Assembly (NCBI GenBank): GCA_964036045.1 | Contig: OZ038378.1 | Span: forward strand, 166,718,001 to 166,782,000 | Direction: 5' to 3' | Length of the DNA: 64,000 nucleotides | Origin: Eutreptiella sp. 'Long Island Sound 2002' | Taxonomy: Eukaryota; Protista; Euglenida | Shown: one piece after another, positions 12,201 through 43,100 of the stretch | Numbering within the stretch: position 1 is the stretch's first letter | Layout: the number at the start of each line of letters is the position of its first letter | Made by a program: the position numbers and the translations under genes | The notes under the pieces: model-generated | The model's database searches: none | What the model saw: the letters and a program-made list of their open reading frames with translations, nothing else | What the model was told of the DNA's origin: nothing

Positions 12201-15200
12201 ACCTTCGTGGCATCTGCTGAATAGTGTTGTCCCTGCTGTACCTCGGCCATGGGCATGATGAGGGTACAGTTAGAGATACAGGTTATGCTGAGGCACTAGC
12301 GACTCGTTATCAGTCCCTTCTGGGGCGCGGGGTTCGCCAAGGACAGCCCAACTCCTGGGACGGCATGGCTCCGCTTATGTCATGCGGGCAGTGTGTGCGG
12401 CCCTGTGCAGACTGCCTAGGCCCGGTGGTGCCTCCCTGCGGCCTTGTGCGTCTTGCAAAGGCCTCGTGCTGATTTGCCCAGGCCTTTTGCATCCTTAATA
12501 TGCATTCCTTCCTTGTGCATCCTGCAAAGTTCTGGTGTTGACTGCCACAGATCCGTGCCCTTGTGCTCACTGCCTCAGAGTCAAGTGTCGCGCGCGGTCA
12601 GACTGCAATTGCTTCCTTAGCACTCATGCTGACACTCAAAAAAGTATATGCGAACAAAATATAAAAGAGATGTACATGCTTTTTTGGTTTTGTTTCATTT
12701 TTTTTTTCAGCACCCGCGTGACACTTGCATGACACTGACCCCACTGCCTAACCCCATGTGCACCCTCACCAGAATTGCATGTCTCATTGCACGTTTCCGG
12801 AGGTGGGGCTGCTTCAGGGGGCAGGGGTGAAGGTCTAAGAACCATTAGTCAGTAAAGTTGAGATGGGGGATAGTAGGCATGGGGAAAGCCCTTTGTTGCA
12901 CCCGATGTGCGTTTGCTCAAGATGCCCAGATTTATTATGGAGAAAAGCATGAAAGAAGCTTTTGAGCCCCCCCCCCAACCCCAATTCATCTGGTCCCTGA
13001 AGCATTACCCATCAGCCATTACCCCCCCCCCCCCTCCCCTGGGGGAGTGTTGGGGGGGACAGCTCCCCTTAGGTCCCCTGGGCCACACCCTTCACGCCCT
13101 GCCCAGGCCTCCCCCCTCCCCAAGCGAGCTTGTCAGGACAACGCAAAGCATTGTTTCTGCAACTCTTCGAATCGTGGAATTGGGCAGTCCCGTTTTCTGG
13201 TGGTCCGTGAAGATCAAGTTTGTCCTGTGGTTCAGGGCCTGGGACGGTATTTCCGCTGGAGCCTTACAGACAGCAACACAACAGCAGTCCTTCAGCCCCA
13301 CAAAGGCCCACTCTCTGCGCCGGATCGAACATGCCTCGTACTCGGCACAGGCCCCAGCCCAAGCTATGCAAGACAATGGTGATCAGGGTCCGAAGTTCGC
13401 ATCCTCTGGACATACATCGGAGTGGCATACCAACTTGTTTCATTAGTGCATGTGATATATAGATCATCGTCGACAGCTCCAGATGTGGGGTGCTTCACCG
13501 GGCAACCGCCACGCCAGAGGCATTACTGGAGGCTCTAAGGACTGTGCCTGTGGGCCTTCCACAGGTGTAACTTGGCCGGCCGCAAAAAGAATATGTACCA
13601 AACGCAGACCTGCCTACGGCACAGTCTGCCCCGCCGCATCGGCCTGCCCCCCGTGCGCAGACTTGTGGAGTGCACCTGCCCCCCTTCCTCCCCCCAACTC
13701 AAGATGCAGGTCCACACTTCATACGATGCAGCCGGACAGTATGAGAGGGTTCTACGGTGAATGGGATGATCGCGAGAGCAGCCAGCATAAAGTGGTTCAG
13801 TCCAGGGTGAAACATTGCTGGCGTCTAGACCCCTTTGGCGTCCCTTGGCCTACGGAGCCTGAACACAGCCCAGCATACGCCCAATGCCACGTCGCCCACA
13901 CTCAAACTGAAAGGAGCAGGTGTCAGAGAGACAAGTGGCCTTCCATGTGGTCTTCCGTGCCAGAGATGACGTCGCTTGCATCCCCGTTGGCATTGCAGCC
14001 GGGGCGTGAACAACAATTTCGTGGCGAGGACCAGTTTCCGCCGCACTTCAACAGAAGAAATGCAACTTCACGCCGTCTCACTGACCGTCGTGGGGTGGTC
14101 ACTAGCGGCAGGTGACATGTCAACCGCCAGCGATTCCAGGCCAACTGACGGCCAACCGATGGCGGTTGGCCACCCACAGTCGGCGGTTGGTGGCCTAATT
14201 GCAAGCGAAGCAGACATGGCTATCACACAAAATGGGTGATGTGTTACGCTGCATCATCTCTGGATGCCAGAGCACTGCCTGCGTACGTCATAAAGAGCGA
14301 CAATTCACTCCCGTGCCACCCCCGCTCAAGCTGAGGTGGGAGGAAGGGTGCCACAAACACAGTACTTGATTCAGGAACCTCGAGTCAAAATCGCAGGAGA
14401 GGATGCGCAGAATTTGGAGAAACACGAAGGGCCCCATCCTTCCACAGTGCCCAGCCTCTGCACTGCTTGCCAGACAACATCATGCTGATAATGGCAAGGG
14501 AGTCATGTACATGCTGCACGTGCCGCATTTCTTTTCAGAATGCGGGACGTGGCTGCCGGAGAGTTCAGCACACAACGCTGGACCTAGATACCTACCGAGG
14601 AATTGTGGCTGTTGGTGTCCGCAGCCTCTGCTAGGGGAGAGGCCGTGGAGAAAGATGGGAAGGGGATGGGAGGACAGAGCCTTCTGCTGCATGGCCATCA
14701 TATCAAAGATGCGGGATGCGGGCAAGTACGGAAACTAAAGAGGTTGAAATTCTCGGGTTCCTCGGCAAACGATAACCAGGGATTGTCAACAACCTTGTGG
14801 CATTGGGAGGCAATTCTAACACAACAGCAAAAAATGGAGCCCTTTTTGCATATGTACATGACACACGACAGTGAGTCGTGGCCATTTATCCAAATAGCAG
14901 TAATAGGAGCAGCAGATACCCCATTGTGTGGCTCGCCGTGTTTAATTGTTTTTGAATTTTACGACACGCAACTGCAACAAGACTAAACATCCAGTTCCCC
15001 AGCTGCAGTGCGTGGGCACAGGAGGGAGACGGCTCAGGGAGGGGGGGCGCGAAAGAAGAGGGGGCGGGGGATGCTATGAACAAATTTTCTGCAATACTTG
15101 AAAGAAGCAAAAGAGCCGTCAGAAGGCAACGCCAACCGCTAATCCTCGTATCTACCACATCCAATGCTACAACAGCATTTTTGGCAAACCTCTCACCCAG

Positions 15201-17536
15201 CGCACTTGGAGCCTGTGGGCTAGCACGCCGAAACTCAAGACGCCAAATCTTCCCCTGAAAAACCATACTTGCAAATTTTGTTCACGCAAAAGAGATCATC
15301 ACCCTTTGGTCTCTCCATTTCTCCCTGCACAGATAGGGGGGAGCCTTAGGTCGGGGAGAGGTGTCACAGACGAGGCACAAGCCCTACTTCTCCCACACCC
15401 TGCGGGGGTGTGGACAGCGCAAGGAGGACCTGGTCAACGGCACAGGATCACCCCCCCCCCCCCCGCGGCATGACAGTAGGGTACGGGGGCCAGACAGCCC
15501 CCCTGCTGGATTCCCCAGACCCCCTCCTCCCTCCCTTTCCCCGCCCAACAAACGCATGGACATGTTGGGCTGCCTGCCTATCCTTAATCAGCGCAATTTT
15601 TCTCTCGTTTTTTGTTTTTTCCTCAGGACAGCCCTACAGTACAGCCGTCCAGGCCAGTGGTTAACCGCCAACGTCCAGCATTGAAGCGCCAAGCGCCGGG
15701 ACTTAACTGCGGCTGGTGGTTAATGGCCAAAATTCGATTCATTGAGCACCAATTGTTCGTTTCATTTAGCACTTTCAATGACAACGGCAGCTTGTTTGCC
15801 TGGCGCACGCTCGCACGCGCAGGGTGCCTGTTTTGCCAACGACCCCCTGGTCTGACTGCCCAAAACGACCCCAGCGGGCAGGAAAATGGTGCTCCAGTGA
15901 CCCAATTAGACCCGACAGTCAACAGCAAGTGGCATGCTGTGAATATGGGCTGCATACGCCGGAGCCCAAAGCTCTGCCATCCAAGCCCCCAACGCAGGCA
16001 CGGGGAATGGAAGAGGCTGGGAAAAGCTGAGCAGTGCCATGCAACATTTCCAGGGGCTCAAAACGCATGTTATTACTGTACCGGGACACAAATCATAGAG
16101 CCCAGGAGCGATGTATATGTATGTACCACGAGTAAAGCAAAGTCACAAAGCGGAGGGCAGGGGCGATTAAGGTCCAAATCTCCGTGTTCTCACAGCAAGA
16201 GGGAAACCCGCATGGGTCAAAAGTTGTGGATCTCCAGCGGTGAAACCTCTATGAGGCAAACCAGCTGGGCCAGAGAACAGCCCAGCCACCCACTTTGGTT
16301 AACCACCCCTCAGGTGTGACGGGTGTCACGGAGTGGGGCAAACCGCGATGGAACCGAAGCATGAAGCATTTGATCCCACAACTTTGAGAGGGTTCTCCTG
16401 ATTTAGATCTGCTGCACCTCATATCATATTATGGGGATCGCAGTAGAACAGCCTGAGGCTACTGCAGTGTCTGAACAAATCTCCAAATAACAAGGGAAAT
16501 GGGTGGCATTAGTTTGCGCTACATCAGTGCACATCTGTACGGTTGACGGAGGGTATTCCGTTCTTCCGCACACCATCCCACCCACAGGACGTCGCTGTGA
16601 ACTCTTGGGTTAGAGTTGGGTTGCCAGTATACTGATCCACTCTAACGCTCATTTCAAACATCCCCCTTGTCTACCGAACACGTTGGATGCTGGTGCGGAG
16701 GTTGCATACTGGTGTCTCTCCGACAAAGGCGTGCCGTGCATCCGGCATTCCTGTGCACGCGCCGTGCATGCGCTGCTGCACTGTTCCACGTCCCGCCCCC
16801 ATGAGAGGGGGCCCGCTGCAGGTGTGCATCTTGCAGGCCATCAGCCCCCCAGCCTGTCCGTCCGCCCTGCAGCGGGCCCAGGCCGGCGAGTGGAGCCCTG
16901 GGGCTTAGCAGACTCCCGGAGCGTCTGCCATAAGGGCTTGAGGTGGATCCGGGTGGCTGCCTGCGCCCTGGGGGTCGAGCACTGAGGCAAGGGGGCACCC
17001 CTGCCCCCACTGGTCCCCACAAAGATCATGCTCGGGTCCGGGCGGTCGCCATAGGTCAAGGCTCATGCGCCCCAGCACCGCTGGTGCGCGATATGCATGC
17101 CCACAGGGCTGAACGGTGTACAGAGTCGCCAGGGACGCCATTGAGCTTCCCCAACACGCCTGTAAGCCTCAATATTGGCCTCCAGATCGAAGTCCAAATC
17201 CAACCCCTTGCCCAGCCCCTACCCTGCCCACCCAGCCCCCTTGCCCTGCACCCCCCAATGCCAATGTGACAACATACGAAGGACAAACCCGAAACCATAT
17301 GCACCAACACCATAACATGGCTTTGGATTCAAACCGCACCTTGCAATTACTGCTGGTAGTTCTCTCATTGCGTGCACAACTTGCAGCAGTCCCCTCTTAA
17401 GCCCTAATGGACCAGCAGAGACCCACGTCATGTCAACATGGTTGAACTTCAACTACTGACAGCACATCATCTCGAGATCAAGACCACCAAACCCTGGTAT
17501 CAACAGTAACGGTGCTGTGGGGCCGGGAGCTGGCCG

Positions 17537-17713
17537 CTAATTCGCCATTGTGCTGGCAGGCTTGGCCCTCTTGCGGCCCATGATGCGGCAGCCGCGAAGG
17601 TTCTGAGGTTTGTCTTCAAATCCTTCGGACCACTGAACCGCCTGGCACACATTCGGGAACCTGAGGGGCACGTGAAGGTATGTATGCGCTGGTACATATG
17701 CCTCAAGAAAGCA
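17537..17713 (-). CDS. SAM-dependent methyltransferase, terminal exon (CFLEAYVPAH...NLRGCRIMGRKRAKPASTMAN*)
   Basis: Acceptor ttctgtcag (AG ending 17714) is phase 0 and matches the donor at 20859. The NLRGCRIMGRK motif fits a methyltransferase C-terminal strand. Stop TAG at 17537-17539. Confidence 0.6.
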   Translation of the reverse strand, partial: CFLEAYVPAHTYLHVPLRFPNVCQAVQWSEGFEDKPQNLRGCRIMGRKRAKPASTMAN

Positions 17714-18714
17714 CTGACAGAAGTCAATATGTAGTACTTGAGGCCGCCCTGATCGCAGTGAACATGGGCATTGCATGACGATTGGGGGTCCTCTTTGGGT
17801 ATGGTCTTGTCTCAGGCTAGAGTCTTTTTGATACAGCAAATTCAGTCCGAGACTGTAAAAATGATAAATGACTGAGATCTGCTTGCGGGTGGACCCAAAA
17901 CCACTGAGCATCTCGCCCACCATTGGCCACTTGGCTTGAGTTGAGGCCTCACGCTGGTTCCTCAAGCGGGCACCCAATCCGAAAATGTGTACATCACGCT
18001 CCGGGCACCGCAAGGAAACAGCCTTTTCAGGACAACCATACAGAACCCCCGACAGAAACCCCAAGCAATACATCATATCTTCAAATGTTGTGCAATATTC
18101 CTCTCCTATTTCTTCCCAAATGAAACCTTCCACAAAAATCTGTTCAAACACAAAAGTGCTATACGTTCCCATTCACAAAATTCAGATTCATCAACCTCTC
18201 TTTTCCAAGAATTGATGAATCCTCGATTTCGAAACAGCAAACAAGCAAACTTCAATGGGGTTGATGGATGTAAGTAATCTTGGAAGTTCTCTCCAAAGGC
18301 TTTCTTTCCTTGGGCGGCTAAAGAAAAAATGCAGGTGGTGTTGCATTGTGCCCCCTCAGTCAACCGCCGCAACCGTGGCTTAACCATACAGTAGTGTGTG
18401 ATGTAAAGACCATGATGTGAAACCTTCTTGGGCATGCCACACGCAAAAACCTATGAACCTGCCATGTGTTGCAGTGTACCACAACAGTCACAACGACAGC
18501 CATACAACGCATGGGCATCACCTTTAGTCACTTGCATGACGTTGTTTTTATGAAGGAATGCACCGCCGTTGAACCAGTTTCGCCCAGCTCGATGTGGCTC
18601 AATGGATGTGGGTGACGATGGTGTGCGCAAGAAGACCAAAAAGCAGAAAACAGTGGGGGGGGGGGGGAAGATGAGGAGAGCCCAAAAAGGATGGTGGCAA
18701 GGATCTAGCACTAG

Positions 18715-19749
18715 GTGAGAGCGTCCCGGACAAGGTGTCTGGCTCAACCAGTGTTGTGGGTGGGCTCAACCGGATCAACCGGGGCCTTCAACCCGGTTTC
18801 ATTTCGGTTTCACAAATGGTGGGAACTGTTGTGTCCCCTTTTGTGTCCTGCAGGAGCAACTCTGACTTGCACGCTTGAAGGCGGAGGGGAAGCAGGAGGC
18901 TTCACGACACAAACACGGCCTCCCACCAAAGGTGGTCATTGGCTGGGTACTCACGGAAGAAGTAGGCACTACACGGGTGTACATGGGCACCATGGTGAAG
19001 CCAACAAAGACGGGACTAAAGCCAATGAGGAGTTGACCCACATCCCACCAGGTCAGGGTCCAGCAGGTAGTGACCCTGCATCTCAAGGGAAGAAGGTGGT
19101 GTGGCCAGTGATGGGGGTGCCAAAGAAGACAAGTTTCACACCCCAAGAGGATGCGGAAAGTGCCTTCCTTGCAGTACAATCAAAGGAGGCTATTATGGAT
19201 GAGCCATTGGCATCAGTCAAGGATGGGAGCAACGTGGGTGAGAAGGACGTAGAGGCCATTGTTGAGGAGGCCGAAGTTGAGGAGTCCGTTGCACCAAAAG
19301 AGGAGAGGAATGACGTGGAACAGGAGGAGATGGAAAAGGATACCGTTGAGGAGGTGGTGGAACAAAAATTTGAGGGCAACGAACCGCTGAAGGAATGTGC
19401 AGCGCTAGCGGTTGAGAAGCCCCTCATACCAAAGGAGGAGGAGAAATTAGTGGATGAGGCAATGGTGGATGCTGATGTTGACAGGGATGCAGTGCGGGAA
19501 GAAGGTGCACCAAATGCCATTGTGGAGACACAAGCCACGCCAGCACTATGGGATTCCAAATGGCTCATACTGTGGAGCAAATTCAACAAGCATGAGCCAA
19601 CTTTTCATACAGGGCAAGGTTACAATTTGAAATTCCAGATGGCTACTTTATACCTTAAATCTCAAATTGTAGCTGGTGATTCAAGTGCACCACAAGTGGG
19701 GCACCCACTAGCTCCTTCTCCTAGAGGGGGAGGGGCAACCAAAACGTAA
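18715..19749 (+). CDS. Acidic low-complexity ORF of unknown function, antisense inside a methyltransferase intron (possible transposon-derived fragment)
   Basis: 344-codon open frame, E/K/V-rich, with a globular-looking C-terminal stretch WLILWSKFNKHEPTFHTGQGYNLKFQMATLYLK. No family recognised. Confidence 0.3.
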   Translation: MRASRTRCLAQPVLWVGSTGSTGAFNPVSFRFHKWWELLCPLLCPAGATLTCTLEGGGEAGGFTTQTRPPTKGGHWLGTHGRSRHYTGVHGHHGEANKDGTKANEELTHIPPGQGPAGSDPASQGKKVVWPVMGVPKKTSFTPQEDAESAFLAVQSKEAIMDEPLASVKDGSNVGEKDVEAIVEEAEVEESVAPKEERNDVEQEEMEKDTVEEVVEQKFEGNEPLKECAALAVEKPLIPKEEEKLVDEAMVDADVDRDAVREEGAPNAIVETQATPALWDSKWLILWSKFNKHEPTFHTGQGYNLKFQMATLYLKSQIVAGDSSAPQVGHPLAPSPRGGGATKT

Positions 19750-20859
19750 ATCAGACCACCAGAAAAATCCTATTGCGCTTCACGATGTACAGTGAACACA
19801 CAAATGGGGAAAGCTGTAGTTGCCGATGGGAGAAGCGCTTGGAAAATTTGCAAGTAAAATACGGCAGGATTCATTTCGTTAGCACTGTAGGGCATGTGTT
19901 AACGGGAGCTTTTCGCATTAACCTTGCCATCATTGATGCCATCCCATGTCGCGTCCACATTTTTCATTCTTTGCCGCCAGGAAACACACATAGTGAAAAA
20001 GGTAAATAAGGGTATGGCTTTCAAATTGAACATTCGTCGTTTTTTTTCCTGTACAGATTCAGTGTGGTTACAGGGCCAGGCAGGCAGCCTTTCACATTCA
20101 GGTTGTAACCAGCAGTGACATGTCACATCCACAGGCCATGGCACTTGACGCCATTTCCAGCCCCCGACGCTGGAAAGGGTGAAGTGGCCAGTGGCCTTTG
20201 TAGATGGTACGATGCAAAGGGGGATTTCGGAACCCCGAGCCCTGCCCAGGGCCGGCTATGGCCCAATTAAAAGCCCCTGGCTTTCTGTTTTGGGGCGTTT
20301 TTTGTGGTAGCATTGGTGTTGTCAGGGCTGTCCTTAACATACAAAAAAAAATAATCTTGTCCATGTACGCTTGAATTAACAACTGCACACACCGCCATGG
20401 AGAAGGCAACCCTCAGTGAAATCAGTGGAATACCAACCATGTAGTGCAAACACCCGCCCAGGGCTGTCCTTTAACAACACATCGTTTTTGTTTTCACTAA
20501 GGAGCGCCTCTTATTAAGAACAGCTCTTTGGACCGGCGCATAACTGGGAATCGCTGGCGGTTCATGGCCAAATTATTCTTCAGTAAGCATCGACTGCAAG
20601 TGAAGCTTAATAGTGACACTCTTGAAACGGATGTATCACTGGATGATCTGAAATTTTGCAGTGTAGTGCCTGGTCGTCTTTGGCCTGTAGTGTGACAAAC
20701 AGCGAATCCTAATTGCCGATAAAAATTAGTGAAAGGTGAAGCACCCTGCCCCCGCATGCCCCAGCCTTCTGTGGAATACGCCTGAAGGGATTGTGACGCG
20801 GAATGCACCGGATCCATGGAGCACTTGGCATACCTCTCATTGCGGTTACTGCACCGGAC

Positions 20860-20968
20860 CTTGTGAAACAGATTGGCCACCGCCATATAGAAGTGCCCCA
20901 ACTCCGTGACATAATCCAGCCCATGCTCAACCTCTAACTTCTGCCTGTTTGCCAAGAACGCCTCGCAC
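20860..20968 (-). CDS. SAM-dependent methyltransferase exon (CEAFLANRQKLEVEHGLDYVTELGHFYMAVANLFHK)
   Basis: Acceptor gtatttcag (phase 2) and donor AAG|gtccgg (phase 0). Phases match both neighbouring exons. Confidence 0.8.
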
Positions 20969-21461
20969 CTGAAATACAGCGGAAATATGCAACTGTGGGT
21001 GTGTCAGGGGGTGCGTTGCAAGGGGCAACACAAATGGGTCACCGGACAGGAACTGGGCAGTTGGGAGGTCATTGTCTTGTGTTTGTTTTCTTTGAAGTTG
21101 TGACGGAAGCTGGGCACAAAATGGGGAAATTGCACAATTCGTGCACAACAAGTGTCACAACAAACTACAAGGTATCTGGGACACGTAACACGAAACGATG
21201 GCGCAGATGTTGAAGAAAGAAGTGTATGCAAGTCAGAAATATCAATATACAAACTCGGTTCACGACGCAAGGACCGTGAGTCCCGGCGCTAGGCAGAGGA
21301 ACGTGCTCTCTAAAAGGGTGTGCTCAAGTATGGACTCCCAGTGAGCAATGTACATGGGACGACGTGCAGTACCCTGAGCGAACAGCACAACACGCTGCAT
21401 TGTATCGTGCATCTGGATGCAGTCGAAGGCTGTATTCTTATGGGACATTTGAATGACGTAC

Positions 21462-21692
21462 CTTTCCCATATGAACGTGCACCACCGGTCAGTCATGTCC
21501 ACAAACTCCTCTACCACAAGACCATTGGCCTCCAGCAGCTCACGCAGCCTTGTCTCAGTGATAGGGGCACCGTTCGGTACCGAGACATCGTCCTTCAGGC
21601 GCTGCTGGTCCTCCGGACACAGCTCCGTGTCGTCAGCCAAGAAGTAGTCTTCAATCATGAAATAGCCATTGTCCGCTAGGCATTGCCCGCAC
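21462..21692 (-). CDS. SAM-dependent methyltransferase exon (CGQCLADNGYFMIEDY...LEANGLVVEEFVDMTDRWCTFIWER)
   Basis: Acceptor ccttcacag (phase 2) and donor AG|gtacgt (phase 2). The L..nG.f.ieDy and D.T..W motifs are typical of class I methyltransferases. Confidence 0.85.
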
Positions 21693-31159: not shown

Positions 31160-33159
31160 CTGCAGCGATGGGGGTTTGGACTGAGGGCCGGCAGGGCTGC
31201 AGGCCATGAGAGCAACGCAAAGCAGCTGCACACACACTTGGCACAAAGCAAATTTTTGTACGTACAGAAATTGCACACGACTGACCCCTGATTCATAACG
31301 CCGCGCACCAGTCGCTTGGACGCACATCAGTGGCTCAATTGCTTCTCTTGCCTTGTTTCCTTTGTTGTGTGGCAGAGGATCGGCAGAACTCGCACCCGCA
31401 CTTGTATGGCTTGGAGCCTTCTTTCTCGGGGCCTACCACCCCTACGGCCCCACCAGCGTGTCAGGGAGGGCGGTGACTGGTCAACGATCGCTCCCTTGCC
31501 GCCAAGGCAGTACAGGGGCTACCGCTGGTCCCCGACAAACGGGATCCCCAGGCCCTGTTTCTCCGGCAGGGAGTGAAAATTTCCGGGCCCTATTAGCCCG
31601 GATTGAGGGAGAACCGCCACATGGCGCGATAAGCTGTTCCAAGTGGTTGGGGTGCACCTCAAGTCTGTGTCCAGGGGGGAGAGCCACCGCATGCCGAACT
31701 GAACAGCGACCACGGGTCGGGGTGCACCTCAACGATGTGTCTGGGAGGGCCCCCACGTGGATAGTGCACATATTCTCGCGAGCAATCCCTTGTGTGTGTG
31801 TTTTTCGTTCAACTGTCAATAAGTGTGGGGCAAAGCAGTCAAGCAAAAGTGGGGGGGGGGGGGGGATGCACAGAATGTGCGACTAGATGGCATGGGGCTG
31901 CAGCATCATCACAGAAATGAAGCTGTCTCTGAAGAGATTGTGTCATACACCCAGTACTCACTGCCTGCGAACCGCGGCTAGAGCACAGCCCAAAGAAGAG
32001 ATCCGAAGCACAGTTTGGAGGGCATACTTGGAGCTCCAAATCATCATGCCGGTGCGGATATTGACCACTTTCGAGAAATATTTGACATCCAATGTACTGC
32101 TCTGGCAAATAATAGTGTCTGGCTTTGTGGGGTGTGAAGCAAACTTGATGTGGTCCTTCAATGCCTGAACGCAAATCAACCGCATGGAATGGATCAGGGG
32201 CCACACAGGGAAACAATTGCTAACAGAAGGGAGTGGTCACTTGCTCCCATGTGTCTCATTCTTGGTACGCAGGTTGCCCAGTACAAATCCATCTTCATGC
32301 CAGGCTCTGAGTGCCGGTTGCTGGTCCTGCAACTTCTTGCCTCCGAATCCCCAACACACACACCGGCTCCACTGCCACTCCCTTGGGGCTTGCGGCAGGT
32401 CCTTTTCCTGGATCTCCTCGTTGCAGCCCCAAAAAAGCAGTGTCTGCCCCGGCTGCTCACGATTGCAGCTGACTGCTCTCGTGGCGCCCGCTCGCTGGCA
32501 TGTTTAACCTTTGGGGGAAACACGCCTTGGACAGCTTCAACTTCATCTTGGGACCATCCCTTTCTGGTCTATTGTAGAGGGCGATGGGTCTCTGGGAGGC
32601 AGGGGGGGGGGGGCGGGGGCGAATGGATTGGGTCGACATGACATAGGACGGGTGGACGAAGAGAGCACCAAGGCAGCAAAATTTGCTTCTGACTGACGGG
32701 ATGATCCGGTGCAACCCTGAACACTTCCTTCATGAGTTACTCTCGAGGCCATTCCATCCGACGGAGGTGAGATGAGATCCCCGGCAGGTGACGCGGAAGG
32801 GGAATCCGCGCTGGTCCACCCCATTCGTCACGACTGACAGCTACCACCAGCAGCAATAGCAATTTTTCTTTCGGGCAGCTACAAGGCTCTTGCTTAGGCG
32901 GCCAAAACAGGTACACTTTTGTACCGCTGTTTTTTTAAAAAAATACCGAGAAATGATGTGGGTTATTTGAGTGATTTACCCTCTTTTTTTGGCCCTGATT
33001 TTTCATGAATGTTTTTTCAGTAAAAAAAGGTACTTTTTTCATGACGTTGCAACAATTTGGGCTCTGCTGTATTACTGCGTAGTAAGGTGTCTCCATAAAG
33101 AAGGATATTGCACTATACGTCCTGCTAAGTGTAGGTTAATACGCCTTTTTCTGCAACGC

Positions 33160-33344
33160 ATTGCGAGGCCTCGCAATACCAGGATTTGATTTTCGGTGCT
33201 TCTGCTAAAATTGAACGCATGCAGAATTCGCATATTGGTAATTACGCCAAATAACATGGTCCGTCGAATGCGAGGCCTCGCATTCCGGTTCGAAATATTC
33301 AAAAAAGGGTCACTTGCGCAAATCGAAATGCGAGGCCTCGCAAT
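33160..33344. promoter_or_regulatory. Left-end cluster of three AWTGCGAGGCCTCGCAWT palindromes (14-bp cores at 33162, 33269, 33329)
   Basis: Perfect cores read directly. The copy at 33266-33285 extends to a 20-bp perfect palindrome. Function is inferred. Confidence 0.8.
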
Positions 33345-33780
33345 AATGTAGCATGAAACAATAAAATGGACAGATCCACCAACTACACAGCATGTACATT
33401 CCCTTTGATGCGGCGCTACTGTATGGCCGGCCATACAGGTCCCGCCGGCATCTCTAGTTTTCATGCTGTGGTCACCGCTGACTTCACTGCCCAACAGCAA
33501 TGGTCGCGCGCCGCAACTGGGTACCGCAGTTAGGATTAACAAGAGAAATGTGGGACCAGTTGACCGTTACAAGTAACCGAGAATGTGCACGCGCGACGCA
33601 GTTGCGCGGAAAGATCGATATGCGCGTGTCGCGTGTGCAGCGCTGTGCTGGCAAGAAATTTTATTTACCTGTAGCATTATAAGTGCCTTTTTTCTTTAAT
33701 TGTTCAATTCAAATACACTTTTTCAATTTTTGAGATGATTGTTCATGCCACGGAACATTGCGCATTGAGCGCAGAGGGAG

Positions 33781-35718
33781 TTGGAACGGACTGTCAGGCG
33801 ATTGCGAGCTTTCTGTGCAACGGAACATGGATATACCACTCCTGAATCCCTATGGGCTGCTGTTGAAAACAACAAGAGCGGAGCTGTTTTCTTTTATGAT
33901 TTTGCGTGCTTGTTGCGACTGAACCGGAAGACACGGCACTCACTTCGGAGACTGAAAGGCAGACCAGAGAGTCGAGCGGCAAATCACTTCAAGGAGAAGT
34001 TCTTTAACCTATACAAAATCTTGCGCTTGCGGTGCACACCCCAACACCAGGACGAGGACGCCCCCGGTTTTGCCTCTATCGGGCGGCAGAACAGGCGCCG
34101 GCTGCGCAGGACAGGGCTGCTTCAGCTGCGAGAGGAAACTATGAAGCAACGGTCCGCGGGAAAGATGCTTGAAACATGGCGTTGGATGGAGAACCGGCAG
34201 GTTTGCGTCTGGATCGACAATTGCTACATTAAGCAGTATGGAACGCATCCAACGATCCAGGATCAGTCGCAAAATTGCACAGCGCTTTGCGTCGTTGAGA
34301 TTCCGTGCAGGTTGCCGTACTTCAGAGGACACCCAACCATAGATGTGCTCATCGGCAGCATCGGCAATGTGGCTGCAGCGCTGGTCAGAATGAAACGGAG
34401 CTTCCGTGGGATAGTAACAGATCTGGGCCTGCTTGCGGACAGACCAGCGCCAATACCGAGCATCAGGGCGCCGCTTGACATCGTGCGATATCCAGTACCG
34501 AATCCTGGTTGGACACCGCTGTTGCTGACTACGCATCAGGTATCCTCGTACAAGGGCCTCGTTGAGGTGTTGGACTACATTGCATCCCTGTCGAACCACA
34601 CGCACCCGATTGTGCCCATCCTCGTTGATGAGAACATACACAAAAGATGCCTCAAGTTATTGTACTGCGACAGAACGCAGCGCTGGAACTGGCACGAAAA
34701 ACTCAAGAGAACTCCCATCTTGTACGGCTGTTGGCATCCCTATAAATACCTTGTGACAAACGTGTGGCGGCGCTTTCATTCTCTATTTGTGTACTTCCGC
34801 TTTGGCCGCTTAGGAGTGGGGAAAACAGTAGGGTCGTACCCGAAGATGAGAGTCATGGAGAGAACTATGGCTGGCATCCTGAAGTGTTCGCCGCATTTCT
34901 TGCGGCAGTTGCGGCGGAAGTCGAACAGGTTACAGGCTGTTGCCGATCACGGTGGGACGGCGATGGATCGACTGAAGAGTGTGGTATGTAAAGCTATGGT
35001 GAACCTTCTGCAAAACTGGTGTCCGCTTGTCCTCTACTGTGGGTTTATCGTGAGGCAATGCAATTGGTCCGGACAACACCCAGGATCCGCCATCGACGCC
35101 CATCATGTTCTCCGACTGGTGTTCGTGCTTTTGACAGAGCTTGGCAGGGCTACAGCTGACCCACTTGTGTATGTGAGGACCATCGGTGTCGCCTTAATGC
35201 ATTGGCAGGCGTTCAACAGCGCCCTGCCCGGATTGTGCTATGGTGAAGAGTTTGGCGAAGTTATGCTCAGTCGACTGGGGTCCATGAAAGACGGACACAC
35301 CTGGGTCGTCACACCGAGCGACGTAGAAGATTTGTTCGTCCAAATATGTCCTGCCAGAATTAACAGACGCCTCCTGGTCAGCGGTTTGTCGTCCGACATT
35401 GAAACAGAGATCCGACAGCGCTTGCACTCGTATGTTACTGACGACCGCCTGAGAATTCGGTACTATCCCTGGCAATCGGGTAGCTCGACTATGGAGAGGC
35501 ACTGGGAGGCTGATCCGGATTTTCCGTCCGACCCTTACGGCGAGCCGGACGTGGACACATACAGGACTTTGTTGACCGATGTTTTGCGTACATTTCTGCG
35601 GCAACCCCAAAACTTCTCACCTGCTGTGCTACGGTTGATGGACAACATGGTTCCTCTGCGGTCTGATGCGCAGAGAACGAACATTTTGGACACAATCTGG
35701 GCCTTTACCGATGCATAG
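33781..35718 (+). CDS. Putative DDE (RNase H-fold) transposase with helical insertion, DUF6589/KDZ-like; true start probably in an upstream exon
   Basis: 645-codon uninterrupted frame with candidate catalytic motifs in order: VWIDN (D146), LVDEN (D283), GCWHPYK (H319) and YGEEFGE (E489-E493). Counted from the ORF-track start. An in-frame stop lies at 33766-33768 and a phase-0 acceptor gcgcag ends at 33774. Confidence 0.6.
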   Translation: MERTVRRLRAFCATEHGYTTPESLWAAVENNKSGAVFFYDFACLLRLNRKTRHSLRRLKGRPESRAANHFKEKFFNLYKILRLRCTPQHQDEDAPGFASIGRQNRRRLRRTGLLQLREETMKQRSAGKMLETWRWMENRQVCVWIDNCYIKQYGTHPTIQDQSQNCTALCVVEIPCRLPYFRGHPTIDVLIGSIGNVAAALVRMKRSFRGIVTDLGLLADRPAPIPSIRAPLDIVRYPVPNPGWTPLLLTTHQVSSYKGLVEVLDYIASLSNHTHPIVPILVDENIHKRCLKLLYCDRTQRWNWHEKLKRTPILYGCWHPYKYLVTNVWRRFHSLFVYFRFGRLGVGKTVGSYPKMRVMERTMAGILKCSPHFLRQLRRKSNRLQAVADHGGTAMDRLKSVVCKAMVNLLQNWCPLVLYCGFIVRQCNWSGQHPGSAIDAHHVLRLVFVLLTELGRATADPLVYVRTIGVALMHWQAFNSALPGLCYGEEFGEVMLSRLGSMKDGHTWVVTPSDVEDLFVQICPARINRRLLVSGLSSDIETEIRQRLHSYVTDDRLRIRYYPWQSGSSTMERHWEADPDFPSDPYGEPDVDTYRTLLTDVLRTFLRQPQNFSPAVLRLMDNMVPLRSDAQRTNILDTIWAFTDA

Positions 35719-35797
35719 AATCGGTTTTAGGTTGATTCCCAGCTGTGTTATGTTATTGCGCGCACAACGGTGCTTTTGCTTCCTGCTTCGTGACTAG

Positions 35798-35932
35798 AAT
35801 GCGAGCCCTCGCAATCGCCTCCTGCAAAAGTACGTTTTTGAGTAGATGTTCTTGCCTGAATGCGAGGCCTCGCAATACAAAGTAGGTAATTATAAACAAA
35901 TACCTGTGTTTTCGATTTCAAGCCCTCGCAAT
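35798..35932. promoter_or_regulatory. Intergenic palindrome cluster: one-mismatch core at 35800, perfect core at 35861, degenerate half-site at 35917-35930
   Basis: aatgcgagccctcgcaat; aatgcgaggcctcgcaat; ttcaagccctcgcaat. Confidence 0.8.
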
Positions 35933-35992
35933 CAAACCATAAATACATGCCGAACGACACAGTTTTTTCCCTTTTTACAGGCCTATTTCATC

Positions 35993-38575
35993 ATGGCAGA
36001 GAGCGTGACGCCAACAAAAGCGGGCAGAGCATCACCAGACACCTTGCAAGTACCGTCCACGCAGGACACGGTGCCAGAGGAGTTCCTGAGGTTCTACAAG
36101 AAGCCTTTGCAGGTGGAGGTCGACGTCACTACCCTTGGGATCGACAAGCAGAAGAAGTACGGTCAGATCCGGAAGTATCGACAGAAGCAAGTGGACGAGG
36201 TTAAGAGAAGTCTCATGGCAAACCCTCCTGAGGAGCCCGTGACCGTGACTGCATGGCAATCACCAGGTACGTAACCGGGCCGCAGCGGCGATGTTTCATG
36301 TGCATGCTCTCAAGACCCTCTTTCCGTCCTCGGTTGATGATTGGATCGTCATTGTAAAGCAGCACTGCGTCTGTGCGCTCAAAGAGCTCCGAAACGAACG
36401 TCTTGAGAAAGGCCTCGACCCACCGCAGTGGATGCAAATTGTTAAGGTCAACCTGCTGAAGACGGAGACGAGTTGGGCTACTCGGGTAGCAATCGCAAGT
36501 CGCAAGCAGGCCATCGATCTCGACATCTCTGCCGTGCCACCGTCGGAAGCAGCTGACAACTTTCTTATGCATTTGCGGGATTCGCCGGCTGGGCCTGACG
36601 AGTCCGCCAGGGATCACATTCACCGAACCATTCCAAAGGCCGCGAGCGGAAGTGCATGGATCCCTCCACAGGTTTCGGATGATGAACTCCAAGTATGTTG
36701 CTGTTTGGAATGCGAGGCCTCGCAATCTGCAATCTAGCAACGTACCCTCCGCCTGTGCAGTCTTATGCCGTTAAGGCCTTTGGACCCTTCTTCACGTGGG
36801 TGTACCACGCGGAGGACGCAGCTGTGCAGTCCGTGATCAATTTCAAGAACATGGACACACCACTGACAATGAACCAGTTGAAGTTTCTGCAGAGTTTGTA
36901 CGAGCCAGCCCTCCTACAACAGGTCGCCGCCGATATGTGGAGACCAAAGGTGAACATCAAGGAAATCCAGGACCGGGCCTCTACTTACCAGAAGCAGCAG
37001 TGGATCAAGTGGCATTGGGGAGCCGCTCCGGACAGCGTCATCCATCCCTCTCGAAGTATGTTCCCCTGACAGGCAAGTAGGCAAACACGCAAACATGAAG
37101 CCAAATCAGTCAATTAAAACTTTCCACACCTGTGCAGAGGCCAGTCCGGCAGAGAGGGTACCGCTGCATGACTGGGATGTCAATTGGTTTCGGATCCCTT
37201 TGGGGGCCTGGCAGTGGAAATTTGAGGCTCCGTCGCCAAAATGGGAAACGCTGAGCAAGGAGCGGTTCTGGACGGCAATGGGACACACTTTTCCAAAGCG
37301 TGGGGCATCAATGGACCTTGGCCGCCCCCGACTGGCCACGCCCTTGACGGAGGTCAAGTCTACGGAGTCTGGAAAAGTGGATGTGCTGAACATTGAGGCT
37401 AGTGGAAAGATGGTCAAAATGTTGTGCGCCCCCTACAAAGATCCACAAGATCCCCTTAAGTTTTTGGAGGCGCTGGAAACGGACATGATTCTTCTGAATG
37501 CGAATCTGGCGGATGGTGCTGATTCTGTGAGTCCGGTTGTGATGGCGAAGTTGATCGAAAACCCCGAAACGGTGCTGGTCATCTACGGCGAGGTGTCGCC
37601 CGCGTTTGACGCCCTGCAAACAGTTCTGGAGTCACCTGGGATTGCGGAGAACGATTACTGGTATGAGAAAGTGCAAGTGTGTCACTGGCTACCGGGTGCG
37701 GGCAAGACGGGAAAAGGCGGAATTCAAGTGAATGCACTGGTTCTGGTGGCCGGTGTAAAGATCAAGAAAAAGGTATGTACAACGCTTTCGGATTGCGAGG
37801 CCTCGCATTCCCTTTAACATCTCGCTACTCCTCTCCGCAGATCCCACCATACATCGGCTTGGATCGCCGCGAACGTGATGAACCAGGGTTCATGCCCCTT
37901 GTCCTCTATACGTGGCTGGCGACGCTGATGCGGAACAGAGACCGCTCGGACAACGTCATGATCTTCGATCGCGATGTGCACATGGCAGCGAAAGTGGCAG
38001 CTTTGGATGATCTTCCACAAGTTTGTTCTCTGCAGTTGACGAAATCAAAGCGATCGGACTGGGCACGGAGCTACCATCACGAGGTGACGCAGCGTGTGCA
38101 GGCAGGAGTAGACCAGACGAGGTTGGCACAGTGCGAGCTCTGGATCCAGTTCGGCATGCCAATGTGGGTCGAGGACGAGAACGTGGGGTATGCCCATCTG
38201 GAAGTGTCGACTGCAGAGGAAGCAAGTCAGAAGGCCCATGCAGAAGTCGGAGACGAGGACTTGGAGGATCCGGAGGACGACGACGATGACGCGGTGCTGC
38301 TGGAACATGATCGGCGATCTCCTCGGAAGTCAACGCAGGTTCGGGCGTTCCAGGCTGGCGATGCACATGAAGATGAGCCGGAGGCGAGCCAACCGCCGAA
38401 GCCGAAAAAGCCGAAGACCAAGGCGGCAGCAGAGCCGAAGCACACGACCCTGACGCAGCCCCAAGGGGTGAAGAGGACGCTGAGCCTTCCGGATCCGGGA
38501 ACAGCAGTGGGCTCCACGGCGAGGAGCAAGATGTTGGCAGCGGGATTGAAGAAGAAGAAGAAGCCCTCCACGTAA
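35993..38575 (+). CDS. Five-exon ~765-aa protein: ParB/Srx-like N-terminal domain, degenerate beta-class N6/N4 DNA methyltransferase-like domain, and acidic/basic tail
   Basis: Exons 35993-36266, 36334-36692, 36761-37055, 37138-37772 and 37841-38575 total 2298 nt (766 codons). Introns 2-4 are GTATGT...CAG of 68, 82 and 68 nt, and each joins consecutive ORF-track frames in phase. Intron 1 is GTACGT...cctcGG (67 nt, non-canonical acceptor). A polypyrimidine acceptor ending at 35980 lies just upstream of the ATG. Confidence 0.75.
36709..36726. promoter_or_regulatory. Palindrome copy inside intron 2 (36693-36760) of the ParB-like gene
   Basis: aatgcgaggcctcgcaat. Confidence 0.85.
37792..37809. 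promoter_or_regulatory. Palindrome copy inside intron 4 (37773-37840) of the ParB-like gene
   Basis: attgcgaggcctcgcatt. Confidence 0.85.
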
Positions 38576-38623
38576 AGGCGTTGGTAGCGCTGCAGCCCTG
38601 TTCTACGAGATATGTCGTCCCGC

Positions 38624-38891
38624 ATTGCGAGGCCTCGCATTCCCAGATTAGGCAACTTGCCATTTCTGCTCTTTTTTTTAGAAGCATCATCTGGAGATGA
38701 TGATTATACTGACCCTAAGGCAGCAGTCAGTATTGCGAGGCCTCGCATTCTTAAAGCCTCACGTGTCGACGCACACAATGTATTTATAGTTTGTATTCTC
38801 TTTTTGCTTGTTTCTGTGTGATCCAAAGCTGTGTGTAATTGCAAGGGATTACCTTGATTCATGTCTCGTATTGCGAGGCCTCGCAATACGA
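38624..38891. promoter_or_regulatory. Right-end cluster of three palindromes (cores at 38626, 38734, 38872)
   Basis: The last copy extends to the 26-bp perfect palindrome tcgtattgcgaggcctcgcaatacga (38866-38891). Confidence 0.8.
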
Positions 38892-39960
38892 ATAGGAAAA
38901 TAGTATATTTTTACATCATTTCGGCAACCTCGGGCGTAAAACTTGGCTTTTTTAAGGGTGCAAAAAAAAAGGAAGGAGAGGACAACACCAAAAAGCAAGG
39001 TTTTATAGTCGAAAAACCCCCAAAATATGGTGCATTTTACAGAAAAGTGGGTAAAATGGCAAAAATTGTGAGGCCCTCGGACCCCCCCCCCAACAGCCCC
39101 CCCCCAGAGTCTTTGACAGATAGCTGAGTGGTGGGTCGCAGCGGGACCGGGTCTAGCCGCCCTTCCGGTGTTGTACTACACGGCAAGCAACCAGCCTTTA
39201 TGGACGCGCCCCCCTTTCTAGGCTAGGCCGATTGCTGTAGGGCTCCCAACTTTCACAGGAGCAATGCAAGTTCGAAGGCTGGAAGCCCCAAGTGTTGATG
39301 GAGAACCACAATTGCCCCATGCCCCGTGCTGATGTCCTCCAGACCGGCGACATAATCCCATACTCCAAGAGCTGGGCTTTTTTGGAGGAAAATCATGCAT
39401 TTTTGTGGGTAATTGGGCCAAAAAATTGAGTAGTCAAATTTTGTGGTTGAAAAAAGTAGGCAAATCGGGCAAATTACCTGTACCAAATTTGCAGACATCC
39501 CGGTACAAAGGGTACCTATTTCGGCCGCCTAAGTCTTGAGTACGGGCACATCCTGACGAGCCAGCGGACCCCCAATGCCCTTGTTTCGCCCCTTTTCACA
39601 TCCACCGCCATTCTTAATTCTGCACTGATTGGCTCTGTGCAATGCAGCTCTCGGGAGGGCACCATGTTGCACTTGAACTCTACTTGAGGGAGAGGGGAGC
39701 GGCATATGAGGGAAATCAGCCAATTTGGACACTCGTGTCTGATCTGCTACTTTCGGCATCCGTATCCAACCGGGAGCTTGCTTTTGGGAATCATCGAAAA
39801 AGATCGTCACCGCCTGGCATCGCGCATTCGGAGAGGGGGGGGGCGGGGGTGGCATTACGGGCGCTCTTCTGGGCTGGCCAAGACTCTGTGGACTAAGGCA
39901 GCCCGTCCAGCTGGGCCACCACTTGGGCAAACATGTGGACCATTGGCGGCGGACTTATAC

Positions 39961-40131
39961 CTTTCGGAGGTCCACGTAAATTAGCAGGTCTGCAGCCACA
40001 ACTCCAGCGATGCAGCCCTTCACTGATTTGTGGTCCGCCGCCACGAAACTGATGGCGGTGTCCGCTTTCAAGCCGTTGGAGCGTATGGACCCCCAGTGCT
40101 CAAATCGGGTGGCGTGGATGAGCTCCATCGT
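39961..40131 (-). CDS. Exon encoding a second, degenerate KptA/Tpt1-like ART-fold domain (TMELIHATRFEHWGSIRSNGLK...DLLIYVDLRK)
   Basis: Acceptor tgtctgcag and donor AAG|gtataa, both phase 0. The H.T...W.sI...GL and lIyvD motifs match the Tpt1 C-terminal lobe. Confidence 0.7.
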
Positions 40132-43100
40132 CTGCAGACACCAGGGCAGATGAGGGCCGTGTGCAGGCGGGCCCGCAGCATGAGACGATGTGGGGGGGGC
40201 GCGATGGGCCGGTGACAAAGACGGTGCAGAACAATGCGACACTCATTATTTGCGCATTGTCACAGACTGCCTCCGTTTGCCTCTGCAGTTGTGCTGATAT
40301 TTATGGCCCCAACAAAATTGCCACGCTTTCAGCTCCCACGTGCCCGTGTCCCCCTTGCGCCCACTCCATGCTAAAAGCAGACCGACGGTGACATACGGAG
40401 AAAACAGGCCGCAGTGTGCGAAATGATGCAGAACGGGCAACCATTTCAATCCCCCCCAAGGGCGCCGTGGCAGACTTCCGTTTCAGGCTTTCGCTGGGGT
40501 GCCTTGCCAATGAACGAGCCCGATCAGACCAGCAGCAGTCCTAGACTATTAATGACATAGGACTGCAACTCGGTTGTTGTGATTGCAGACCAGGGACCAG
40601 TTTGGTCAGTTTGCTGCTGTTTTCTTGGGGTTGTGCGTGGCCTGAGGGTTTTGAGGAAAATTCTGAACCAGTTACTGCAGAAAGTGATCAGAAAAGGTCA
40701 CTGAAAACCCCCGCACAGGGCCTTACAACAGGTGTCAGATTAGATGCATGCAACTGGTAAATGGTAAAAGGCAGAGCACAGCAAAGAGCAGAAGAAGAAG
40801 AAAATTCCCTTCAGAACATCTTTCGGCCCAAGGCAAGACCAACGATATGCCCAAATGGGGCCTGTTCTATGCTCTTCAATTATCCCTCTTCCACAGACAA
40901 CATTCCAGCACACGGTTTAGAAGCCCTCTGGCAGCTCTGGCGATCACAACCAGAGGCAACAGCATTCGAAGCTCCCCCCATCCAAAAACACATCTTCCAG
41001 CACGATGGCAACCACGTGTACAAACATGCATACACGCATGCATGTATAAAGATATGTGAATCCACCAGATGCACCGTATGCATGGTGTAAATACAGCATA
41101 TACGCGCATACATGTAGACACATACACACATTCACACATACACATACACACACACATAAACACATTTTCACACGTAAAAACTTGTGTGCGTGTATACCAC
41201 CAAATAAGCAGTGATGCACTACACATCACGGTTGCCGAATATTTTCTGTCACTCAACCTTACCACTGCTTGGCTTGGTTTGAATGCTTGTTGAAACTTGG
41301 CCAGATTATTTGTCATGATTCGGGTTACTATGTGTGCAGCAACAAGCGCTCCACAGAGCTTTCTAAGCCCACCATCAAAGAAGAGATTTTAAATAATACA
41401 TTGATGCTGAGTGAGACGGTTTGCAGAGTAATTGATGGTAGAGTCAGCAAATGACAATTGGAGGGACCATACTGCATGTGCGATTGAAGGGTTGGTCTGT
41501 GGGCTACAGGAATTCTCCCATGCCGAAGTGGACAAAACCTGGTTCCCCAAACAACCTGTTCATAGCGCACACTAAGATCCAGAAGCAAACTCCAGAAGCA
41601 CATCCCAAACGCATCTAACCGAGCGCGTCAGGAGGAGCCAGGGGGTTGCAATGCGGAAGGCTGGGTGGATTGTCAATTGTTGGAGGAGGGATCAACAGAG
41701 GATCCTCACCAGATGCCCGCACCCCCTTTTAGAAGAGGGCTCTGCTCGTGGAACTCACCGAAATGACTTGGACATGATCTAAACCCCACAATTTAGAACA
41801 AGTGAAAATGGTAAACCCGACCAGAATGGCGCCCATGATGTTGCTAGAATGCCATTGGGTTTCCAACCTTGGGTTCTTCACTAGATGTGCTTTCAAGCGA
41901 TGGTTCATGCAAAGGTGGCTCAAACAATGTTCCCGAAGGGACATCTCTTGGGTTGAGAGTAGCCATAACCAGTAAACACAATAGGATACATTTCTTGATG
42001 CCACCCAAATGGGACAACCTATGTTGTGCTTTATCTGCCATTAAAGCCTGATACACTGTCCAAGCACTTATGGGGCACAGAAAAATCCGAGAGCAATCCG
42101 AGACCCTGGGGGAGGGGGGGGGTTACAGAAATAGGATAAAATAAAAGACTTGGTATGGCAGGGAAAGCCATGTCCCTGACGAACAGCTGGAGCTTGTCTC
42201 TTTCTCTTTTCTTTCTCTTTGTCCTGAAACAACTTATCCTTGGCCCAGTTGTGTGACAGTGTACTTACTTATTGCTAATAAAGGACCAGGCTATCAACAT
42301 ACTGTGCATGGTGTGTGTAGTATGTTAAGCAACATGTGGGCACTTTGTGTTACATTTCTTGCACTACAGACCAGCAGACAGTGTGTCTTTGGACATGCCC
42401 AAGGGTTCTAGGCATTAGGCATCTCTATGCGCCGAGCACCAAGGCGGGGTATGCGGCTCAAACTTTTGCAGCTGTGGAGCCTCAAACAGGGACCCCGTTT
42501 TCAAAGGGCATGGGTTGTTCAATAACCCTGCTAGGCAAATCTATACACGAGTGTGCTCACAAATGCAGGTCCATTTAGAAGGTCCTCGGGAAGTCAGCTG
42601 TTGTTGACTGCTGTTTGGCTGAATCTGAGTGTACTGTGTACCGGAACCAGTTTGCGCGCTATGCACAAAACACTGTCTTGTATCTTGGTGTGTACTCAAT
42701 CTTCCCTTCAGCAATCGGGATTGTTCGTGCCATTTTGCTTACATGTTCCCCAGCAACAAGTCAAATATTGTTAAGGAATTAGTGAAATGGCCATGTGCCT
42801 GTGCTTTTGGGGATGATGAGGACGGAGTGCCGTTTGGTTCACTGATTTCTCCATTTTATACACCATCTGTTTGCCCTTCTTTCAGAGGGTAAGGCAGGGG
42901 TGGGGGTGATGGGTATTGGTGTTTATAGCACAAATAGCGCAACCATGACATGTTTGCTGCCCTCCATCATGCCACAAGATTCTTGAACATTCGTTTTTTC
43001 CCACCGACGTGTTGGTGAAAAAAGACACCTGGGGCCGTTTGCGGCTCTTGATAAGCTTTTCTGTCCTCTTTTTCTGCCACTCGTGTTCACTGGCTTCTTA

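Follow-up and report, generated by a model that had tools for sequence, protein, structure and literature searches.

A two-gene cut-and-paste DNA transposon with lineage-specific palindromes in the genome of Eutreptiella sp.

P and hAT elements, transposons that insert with target duplications of 8 bp (7-8 bp for the P element), and the En/Spm (CACTA) and VANDAL elements are among the described systems closest to the element reported here. En/Spm encodes two proteins, the transposase TnpD and an accessory protein, TnpA, which binds repeated subterminal 12-bp motifs and is thought to pair the ends of the element and to counteract silencing. In the Mutator-like element VANDAL21 of Arabidopsis, which carries the VANA transposase, the anti-silencing protein VANC binds a short motif (YAGTATTAY) that accumulates in non-coding DNA of its own element, within introns, between genes and at the ends, and both motif and protein differ between related families and co-evolve (PMC5735166). 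The element described here was found in a stretch of 64,000 nucleotides of Eutreptiella sp. 'Long Island Sound 2002' (GenBank assembly GCA_964036045.1, contig OZ038378.1, positions 166,718,001 to 166,782,000, forward strand), hereafter the window, in which all positions are counted from the first nucleotide. It combined a transposase gene (ORF1), a second gene (gene 2) and arrays of a palindrome found only in element DNA. An original prediction, made from the letters of the stretch without database searches, regarded a ParB/parS-like or self-marking system of this kind as not known for the standard cut-and-paste superfamilies; two-protein transposons with repeated binding motifs are not unprecedented, as En/Spm, VANDAL and Harbinger display.

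The element spanned positions 32893-39533; these limits were set by the points at which homology to paralogous copies breaks off, by terminal inverted repeats (TIRs) and by a duplication of TCTTG. Nine loci were fetched from an ENA assembly (analysis ERZ25074135) for copy comparison. The left breakpoint fell exactly at 32893 in loci L001, L008 and L009, and the right breakpoint at 39533-39534 in L003, L005 and L009. The left TIR (32893-32926, + strand), beginning with CTTAGGCGGCC, was the reverse complement of the right end (right TIR 39501-39533, - strand). These TIRs were 33-34 bp long and differed from each other by three mismatches and one indel in the window copy, those of other copies being nearly perfect; their terminus, CTTAG, was also present in the subfamily represented by L002 and JGI contig L010. 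Directly outside the TIRs, an identical TCTTG 5-mer was found on both sides (32888-32892 and 39534-39538), constituting a perfect 5-bp target duplication, and the corresponding pair in L009 was TGGGT/TGGAT. A small palindrome, GGTAC-N6-GTACC, was present within each TIR (left: 32910-32925) and kept in all copies. The original prediction had placed the element at 32900-38960: the element was real, with ends that have to be moved to the span given above. Its right 0.6 kb had been missed because a secondary insertion of 303 bp (39073-39375), missing at the same point in L003, L005 and L009, interrupts the right subterminal region. No further copy of this insertion was found in the window or in any fetched locus.

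Copies of the element were recovered in L001, L003, L004, L005, L008 (two copies) and L009, with unrelated flanks at every locus. Close homologs of ORF1 numbered 21, and at least 130 open reading frames (ORFs) were homologous to exon 4 of gene 2; all were located on long contigs of one ENA assembly except for one Logan contig. A second count gave 150 protein clusters, almost every one of them on a different long contig of the same assembly. Because of its TIRs, its 5-bp target duplication and the different flanks at each locus, the element is a multi-copy cut-and-paste (class II, TIR) DNA transposon. The mobility proposed in the original prediction was thereby borne out, two full copies having 5-bp duplications and the paralogous loci numbering more than 130. 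The L002-type sister subfamily formed protein clusters of 65-77 members at ≥90% identity, so that the family as a whole has been prolific recently, although the window copy is decaying (see below). The right end of the L002-type element was looked for and not found, and a metagenome scan for more loci with alignment A1 returned no relatives. The two L008 copies (8755-12878 and 19173-21488), less than 10 kb apart on one contig, were nearly identical, with a synonymous divergence (dS) of 0.027; this suggests that they arose by local duplication and not by independent insertion. Between the two genes of L002, an unrelated nested element of 1.6 kb (10265-11867) bore 77-nt inverted ends that were 97% complementary, and L010 displayed the uninterrupted site for it, a true empty-site comparison.

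ORF1 (33781-35718, + strand; 645 codons open) was predicted to encode an RNase H-like core followed by an all-alpha C-terminal region. A first AlphaFold2 model built on a shallow alignment of 11 sequences had a pLDDT (predicted local distance difference test) of only 36; redone with 49 diverse sequences (alignment A2), the model reached a pLDDT of 89.5 and a predicted template modelling score (pTM) of 0.82. The best 15 matches of this model in a Foldseek search against the PDB were all DDE transposases, the first being the Drosophila P-element transposase (E 2e-3, probability 1.0), followed by Hermes and ISCth4 (IS256-type), with RAG1 and HzTransib at ranks 14-15, while the Foldseek viral library gave nothing meaningful. 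Residues D146, D233, D283, W318, H319 and E360 were invariant in the ORF1 alignment, and E489/E490/E493 nearly invariant. In the model, D146 was located on the first core strand, D283 just past a core strand and W318-H319 just past the next strand. As read from the invariant residues, the catalytic triad is probably D146/D283/E489-490, together with an alpha-helical insertion like that of hAT and P elements, and H319 would occupy the place of the histidine in the hAT/P-type CxxH. The N-terminal helical bundle (residues 1-110) was also well modelled. The model thus supports a DDE-type transposase with an RNase H-like core, structurally closest to those of P elements and hAT, in agreement with the DDE-like transposase of the original prediction; the outcome that would have refuted that prediction, a failure of ORF1 to adopt an RNase H fold, did not occur, and the label "DUF6589-like" given to ORF1 in that prediction found no sequence support.

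The P/hAT (Hermes) transposases, and the wider P/hAT/MULE/Transib-RAG1 group, resembled the ORF1 model most in structure, including the order of an aspartate on the first RNase H strand, an aspartate after the fourth, an invariant histidine just after the fifth, a long all-alpha region and then conserved glutamates. The family differed from them by its 5-bp target duplication and by the absence of any sequence match to a PDB or Pfam transposase for any of the 49 diverse ORF1 members. No Pfam family was matched by ORF1 and 48 relatives, and no PDB sequence by the ORF1-family profiles. More specifically, the 49 members gave no Tnp_P_element/THAP9-type Pfam match and their profile missed the PDB P transposase; for hAT, there was no PDB sequence match to Hermes; and neither THAP, BED nor the hAT dimerisation domain (PF05699) was detected in the ORF1 family. 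The 5-bp duplication was the sole criterion shared with Transib, from which the family differed by its CTTAG termini (not CACNGTG-type) and by the absence of a PDB sequence match to HzTransib/RAG1. The element also differed from PIF/Harbinger, as neither gene had a Pfam match (DDE_Tnp_4, Myb-like ORF) and the duplication was 5 bp long instead of the 3-bp TWA, and from En/Spm, since it displayed no CACTA termini, no 3-bp duplication and no Pfam Transposase_21/Transposase_24. A profile search of ORF1 against 1.84 billion representatives returned 1160 related clusters (at 50% identity), 246 of them at E ≤1e-30, and those inspected were located on short contigs from Logan, ENA and JGI. The best reading of the element is therefore an unclassified variant of two-protein cut-and-paste transposons, previously unannotated. 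Comparisons were made with Pfam families and the PDB, not with Repbase, in which the family may already be catalogued under another name.

Gene 2 was located 3' of ORF1 on the same strand and was composed of five exons (35993-36266, 36334-36692, 36761-37055, 37138-37772 and 37841-38575) separated by introns of 67, 68, 82 and 68 nt (36267-36333, 36693-36760, 37056-37137 and 37773-37840), all on the + strand, with splice signals GTAYGT...CAG. Introns of this length (67-82 nt) had already been noticed in the original prediction. Exon 1, delimited by frame analysis and copy alignment, was homologous to the gene 2 N-termini of L002 and L012, and exon 5 encoded an acidic and then lysine-rich tail up to the stop codon. 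The spliced coding sequence of 2295 nt contained no stops and would yield a product of about 765 residues. Gene 2 was found 3' of the transposase gene and in the same orientation in L002, with an ORF1 34% identical, and in L012 (about 25%). Because its position is unchanged between lineages that share only 25-34% identity in their transposases, gene 2 is, as judged by sequence comparison, a conserved ancient core gene of the family and not the captured cargo that the original prediction had made of it.

Palindromes were distributed over the non-coding parts of the element. When the window was scanned with the core TGCGAGGCCTCGCA (an 18-20 bp palindrome), 10 matches at ≤2 mismatches were obtained, all within 33162-38885, against 0.28 expected by chance (shuffled sequence), so that the exclusive presence of an 18-bp palindrome in this block of the window, already noticed in the original prediction, was confirmed. 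An 11th copy was half decayed. Three palindromes formed a left array (33159-33178, 33266-33285 and 33326-33345), whose positions were conserved in L001, L008 and L009. Three others were intergenic (35797-35816, with one mismatch; 35858-35877; and the half-decayed 35914-35933) and three formed a right array after gene 2 (38623-38642, 38731-38750 and 38869-38888). The remaining two were found in intron 2 (36708-36727), whose L002 equivalent holds the palindrome of the L002 lineage, and in intron 4 (37791-37810), where it was found too in the Logan homolog L011; intron 3 contained none. None of the 11 palindromes was located in coding sequence. The possibility that they are independent mini-elements was rejected, as the exact 12-bp core was absent outside element-homologous DNA in the window and in loci L001-L005, and positions were conserved between subfamilies. 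A literature search on the palindrome string retrieved one unrelated paper only.

Different lineages of the family harbored different palindromes. The L002 subfamily and L010 displayed a 22-bp palindrome with the same 12-bp core as in the window and different outer bases, in the same layout, with three copies upstream, two behind ORF1 and three within introns of gene 2. In L012, a different palindrome (half-site CCGCGAA) was present six times (0.00 expected) in the 1.9 kb that precede the transposase gene. L006 contained seven half-sites of another motif, TTCGCTCC, at ≤1 mismatch (2.07 expected), and L007 two copies of a fifth motif. These per-lineage palindromes were GC-rich and 16-32 bp long; they recurred in nearly every non-coding part of the element and were missing from the flanking DNA. 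The original prediction had attributed the palindrome array to the element and had proposed to look for an own palindrome in each relative: both points held, the latter in L002/L010, L012, L006 and L007. The arms of the L006 motif (330-554, 2716-2733), TTCGCTCC / GGAGCGAA, equalled those of the window, TTGCGAGG / CCTCGCAA, except that all inner base pairs were flipped, a change that would keep a hairpin stem and alter a protein recognition surface; coincidence is also possible.

The explanation proposed here, held with moderate confidence, is that of a multi-copy TIR transposon with a DDE transposase and a constrained gene 2, in which the lineage palindromes would be the cognate sites of an element-encoded protein, the gene 2 product being the favoured binder. 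Such a protein is predicted to be dimeric and sequence-specific. Its binding at sites across the whole element would allow the family to recognise its own copies, and this self-recognition could serve end pairing for the transposase, control or protection of element expression, or both. A VANC-like role is suggested because the palindromes are spread over terminal, intergenic and intronic DNA, as is VANC21 on VANDAL21, and lineage-specific motifs are concentrated in the same non-coding compartments in both systems. They differ in that VANC motifs are direct tandem repeats and not palindromes, and in that gene 2 matches no Pfam family; moreover, VANC binding and methylation loss are VANDAL data, while the present system is known from sequence. 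The likeness with En/Spm lies in the two proteins and in the short motifs arrayed near both ends, often as inverted pairs in En/Spm, and the symmetric three-site arrays close to the two ends are reminiscent of subterminal repeats in both hAT and En/Spm. Here, however, the motifs are true palindromes and are also found in introns and in the intergenic region. A wider version of the proposal, considered rather doubtful, would make ORF1 and gene 2 a widespread unclassified superfamily with an accessory protein, possibly of ParB/DGQHR-like fold, that recognises the lineage palindrome; it would be a eukaryotic counterpart of ParB/parS or VANC, marking "self" copies for end pairing or against silencing and co-evolving with its site.

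Several points weigh against the proposed explanation. An empty site was found only for the unrelated nested element (L002 versus L010), while the family's own insertions showed neither an empty site nor an excision footprint, and the target-duplication check relies on two full-length copies only, one pair of which matches at 4/5 positions. The Foldseek E-values were weak (2e-3 at best) with TM-scores of 0.31-0.42, so that the superfamily assignment is loose. Gene 2 introns were derived from frames, splice signals and copy comparison, not from RNA. No profile library displayed a DNA-binding domain in the ORF1 or gene 2 protein, and perfect palindromes are equally consistent with hairpin or cruciform formation as with dimer binding.

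The original prediction had read gene 2 as a bacterial-type ParB-methyltransferase fusion carried as cargo, with the palindromes as parS-like sites or self-marking methylation targets. By eye, the N-terminus of gene 2 displayed a strand, GQ(I/V)R, a helix, a P-x-V strand and (N/K)(G)QH, a ParB/Srx- or DGQHR-like pattern common to the window, L002 and L012, and a palindromic site of about 16-18 bp that recurs in arrays beside such a gene does resemble parS. This N-terminal pattern is a lead, not a result. Gene 2 pieces, together with longer single-ORF versions from L002, matched nothing in Pfam, PHROGs and NCBIfam; searches against PDB sequences (with single sequences and profiles A3 and A4) gave nothing informative, and tblastn against phage genomes gave nothing. 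The hhalign probability of the gene 2 N-terminal alignment against P1 ParB was 0.9%, a weak negative given the shallow profile (Neff, the effective number of sequences, 1.7). At the methyltransferase motif position, IPPY in the window corresponded to LPNY in L002, and no glycine was present in either at the position of the glycine-rich S-adenosylmethionine-binding loop (motif I, FxGxG). Because the DPPY-like motif is unconserved and motif I is devoid of glycines, gene 2 is unlikely to encode an active N6/N4 methyltransferase (PF01555 type). The system further differs from ParB/parS and ParB-methyltransferases in that homology has no statistical support and in that the gene is eukaryotic, contains introns and resides in a cut-and-paste transposon as an ancient core component. 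Overall, a ParB-methyltransferase module is regarded as an improbable identity for gene 2.

The transposase itself could bind the palindromes through its N-terminal helical domain (residues 1-110), for transpososome assembly only, leaving gene 2 with an unrelated role. This possibility, although given less credit than binding by the gene 2 product, is consistent with the well-modelled helical bundle and with the spacing of the three-site arrays, which were similarly distant from the ends (267-453 bp for the left array and, with the 303-bp insertion discounted, about 340-610 bp for the right one). All six sites observed in L012 were upstream of the transposase gene, and there is a precedent in hAT elements (PMC10368747), whose subterminal repeats are bound by BED domains. 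Five of the 11 sites in the window were nevertheless internal (intergenic or in two introns) and up to 3 kb from either end, which would be unusual for pure end recognition, and intronic placement was conserved between subfamilies.

Alternatively, the palindromes might act as nucleic-acid structures, either as RNA hairpins of introns and UTRs involved in termination, splicing or transcript stability or as DNA cruciforms. Their perfect and GC-rich character, and their arrays close after stop codons (+80 to +200 for ORF1, +50 to +300 for gene 2, and +12 and +69 after ORF1 in L002), are compatible with this role, as is the flipped L006 motif, which preserves a stem and not a recognition surface. 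The left array, however, preceded the ORF1 start by 400-590 bp and is possibly untranscribed; the window palindrome has no loop; its outermost position was A or T on both sides, with complementarity not kept; and no Rfam family matched. A structural role is accordingly given little chance of being the explanation.

Both genes showed signs of past use in the family and of decay in the window copy. The ratio of nonsynonymous to synonymous substitution rates (w, dN/dS) was 0.22 for ORF1 at dS 0.38 (window versus the L001/L008 lineage) and 0.28 for gene 2 at dS 0.37 between sub-lineages. On the basis of these ratios, both genes evolved under purifying selection between sub-lineages, the family having diverged while both were in use. 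In contrast, the window copy compared with its closest relative, L004, displayed a near-neutral w of 0.73, and carried about 2.7% private substitutions. The recent activity claimed in the original prediction thus applies to the family, while this copy is decaying.

Alignment of five paralogous copies placed the ancestral ORF1 start at ATG 33745 (+ strand), with a premature TGA at codon 8 (33766-33768) in the window. This codon was CGA or CAA in the paralogs, and L008 reads through from the ancestral ATG; the next in-frame ATG after the window TGA corresponds to residue 121 of the listed ORF. In gene 2, the acceptor of intron 1 was CGG in the window (36331-36333; AG to GG at 36332-36333) and CAG in L001, L003, L004 and L005. 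A 19-nt mini-intron that would rescue the frame was judged implausible, since paralogs have a normal intron of 67-69 nt with an intact acceptor, and no other in-frame splice alternative was found for this intron in the window. Each gene of the window copy thus has a long open frame with one probable knockout: of the two intact co-oriented genes of the original prediction, the common orientation on the + strand was retained and the intactness was not. With the stop at codon 8 of ORF1, the lost acceptor of gene 2 and the 303-bp insertion, the window copy is probably dead. It could be mobilised in trans, since both ends and the site arrays remain.

Base composition also distinguished the element. 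GC content was 0.46 at the left end (33001-34000) compared with about 0.53 elsewhere, which bears out the AT-rich ends of the original prediction for the left side. The CpG observed/expected ratio was 0.92 in the element (32893-39533) and 0.60 in the remaining 57 kb of the window, and either element copies escape CpG methylation or the background CpG depletion has another cause. Private substitutions occurred at CpG and elsewhere at rates of 0.021 and 0.028, respectively, in the window copy, and of 0.081 and 0.073 in L004. Methyl-CpG decay as the cause of the lesions found no support, the substitution rate at CpG in the window copy being no higher than elsewhere. A second, unrelated 20-bp perfect palindrome, CTGTATGGCCGGCCATACAG, was found at 33419-33438, some 310 bp 5' of the ATG at which the ancestral ORF1 begins, and had variant forms in L001, L008 and L009; it is possibly a promoter element.

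Should the palindromes prove to be cognate sites of an element-encoded protein, the family offers a natural series in which the evolution of a transposon self-recognition code could be followed: at least five lineages share the two genes and differ in their palindrome. A principle documented mainly in plants (En/Spm TnpA, VANDAL VANC) would then extend to other eukaryotes. The transposase family is large and escapes detection by Pfam, so that it is currently overlooked when the genomes of its carriers are annotated. The lineage-specific palindromes and the conserved gene 2, devoid of a recognisable domain, are the parts worth following up, and gene 2 is a good target for structure prediction.

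Other features were observed around the element and at the fetched loci. A weak KptA/Tpt1-like exon (PF01885, E 0.0024, below the Pfam cutoff) was located at 39955-40239 on the - strand, about 420 bp to the right of the element; it is the sole evidence for the position inside a host intron that the original prediction had considered possible. A 584-codon ORF rich in LRR_6 repeats was located at 8503-10257 of the window, also on the - strand. A search for a dinoflagellate spliced-leader relic found none. L004 harbored at 15271-18936 a unit resembling a long interspersed nuclear element (LINE), in which an ORF for an AlkB-type 2OG-Fe(II) oxygenase (PF13532) was located directly 5' of the endonuclease/reverse-transcriptase ORF.

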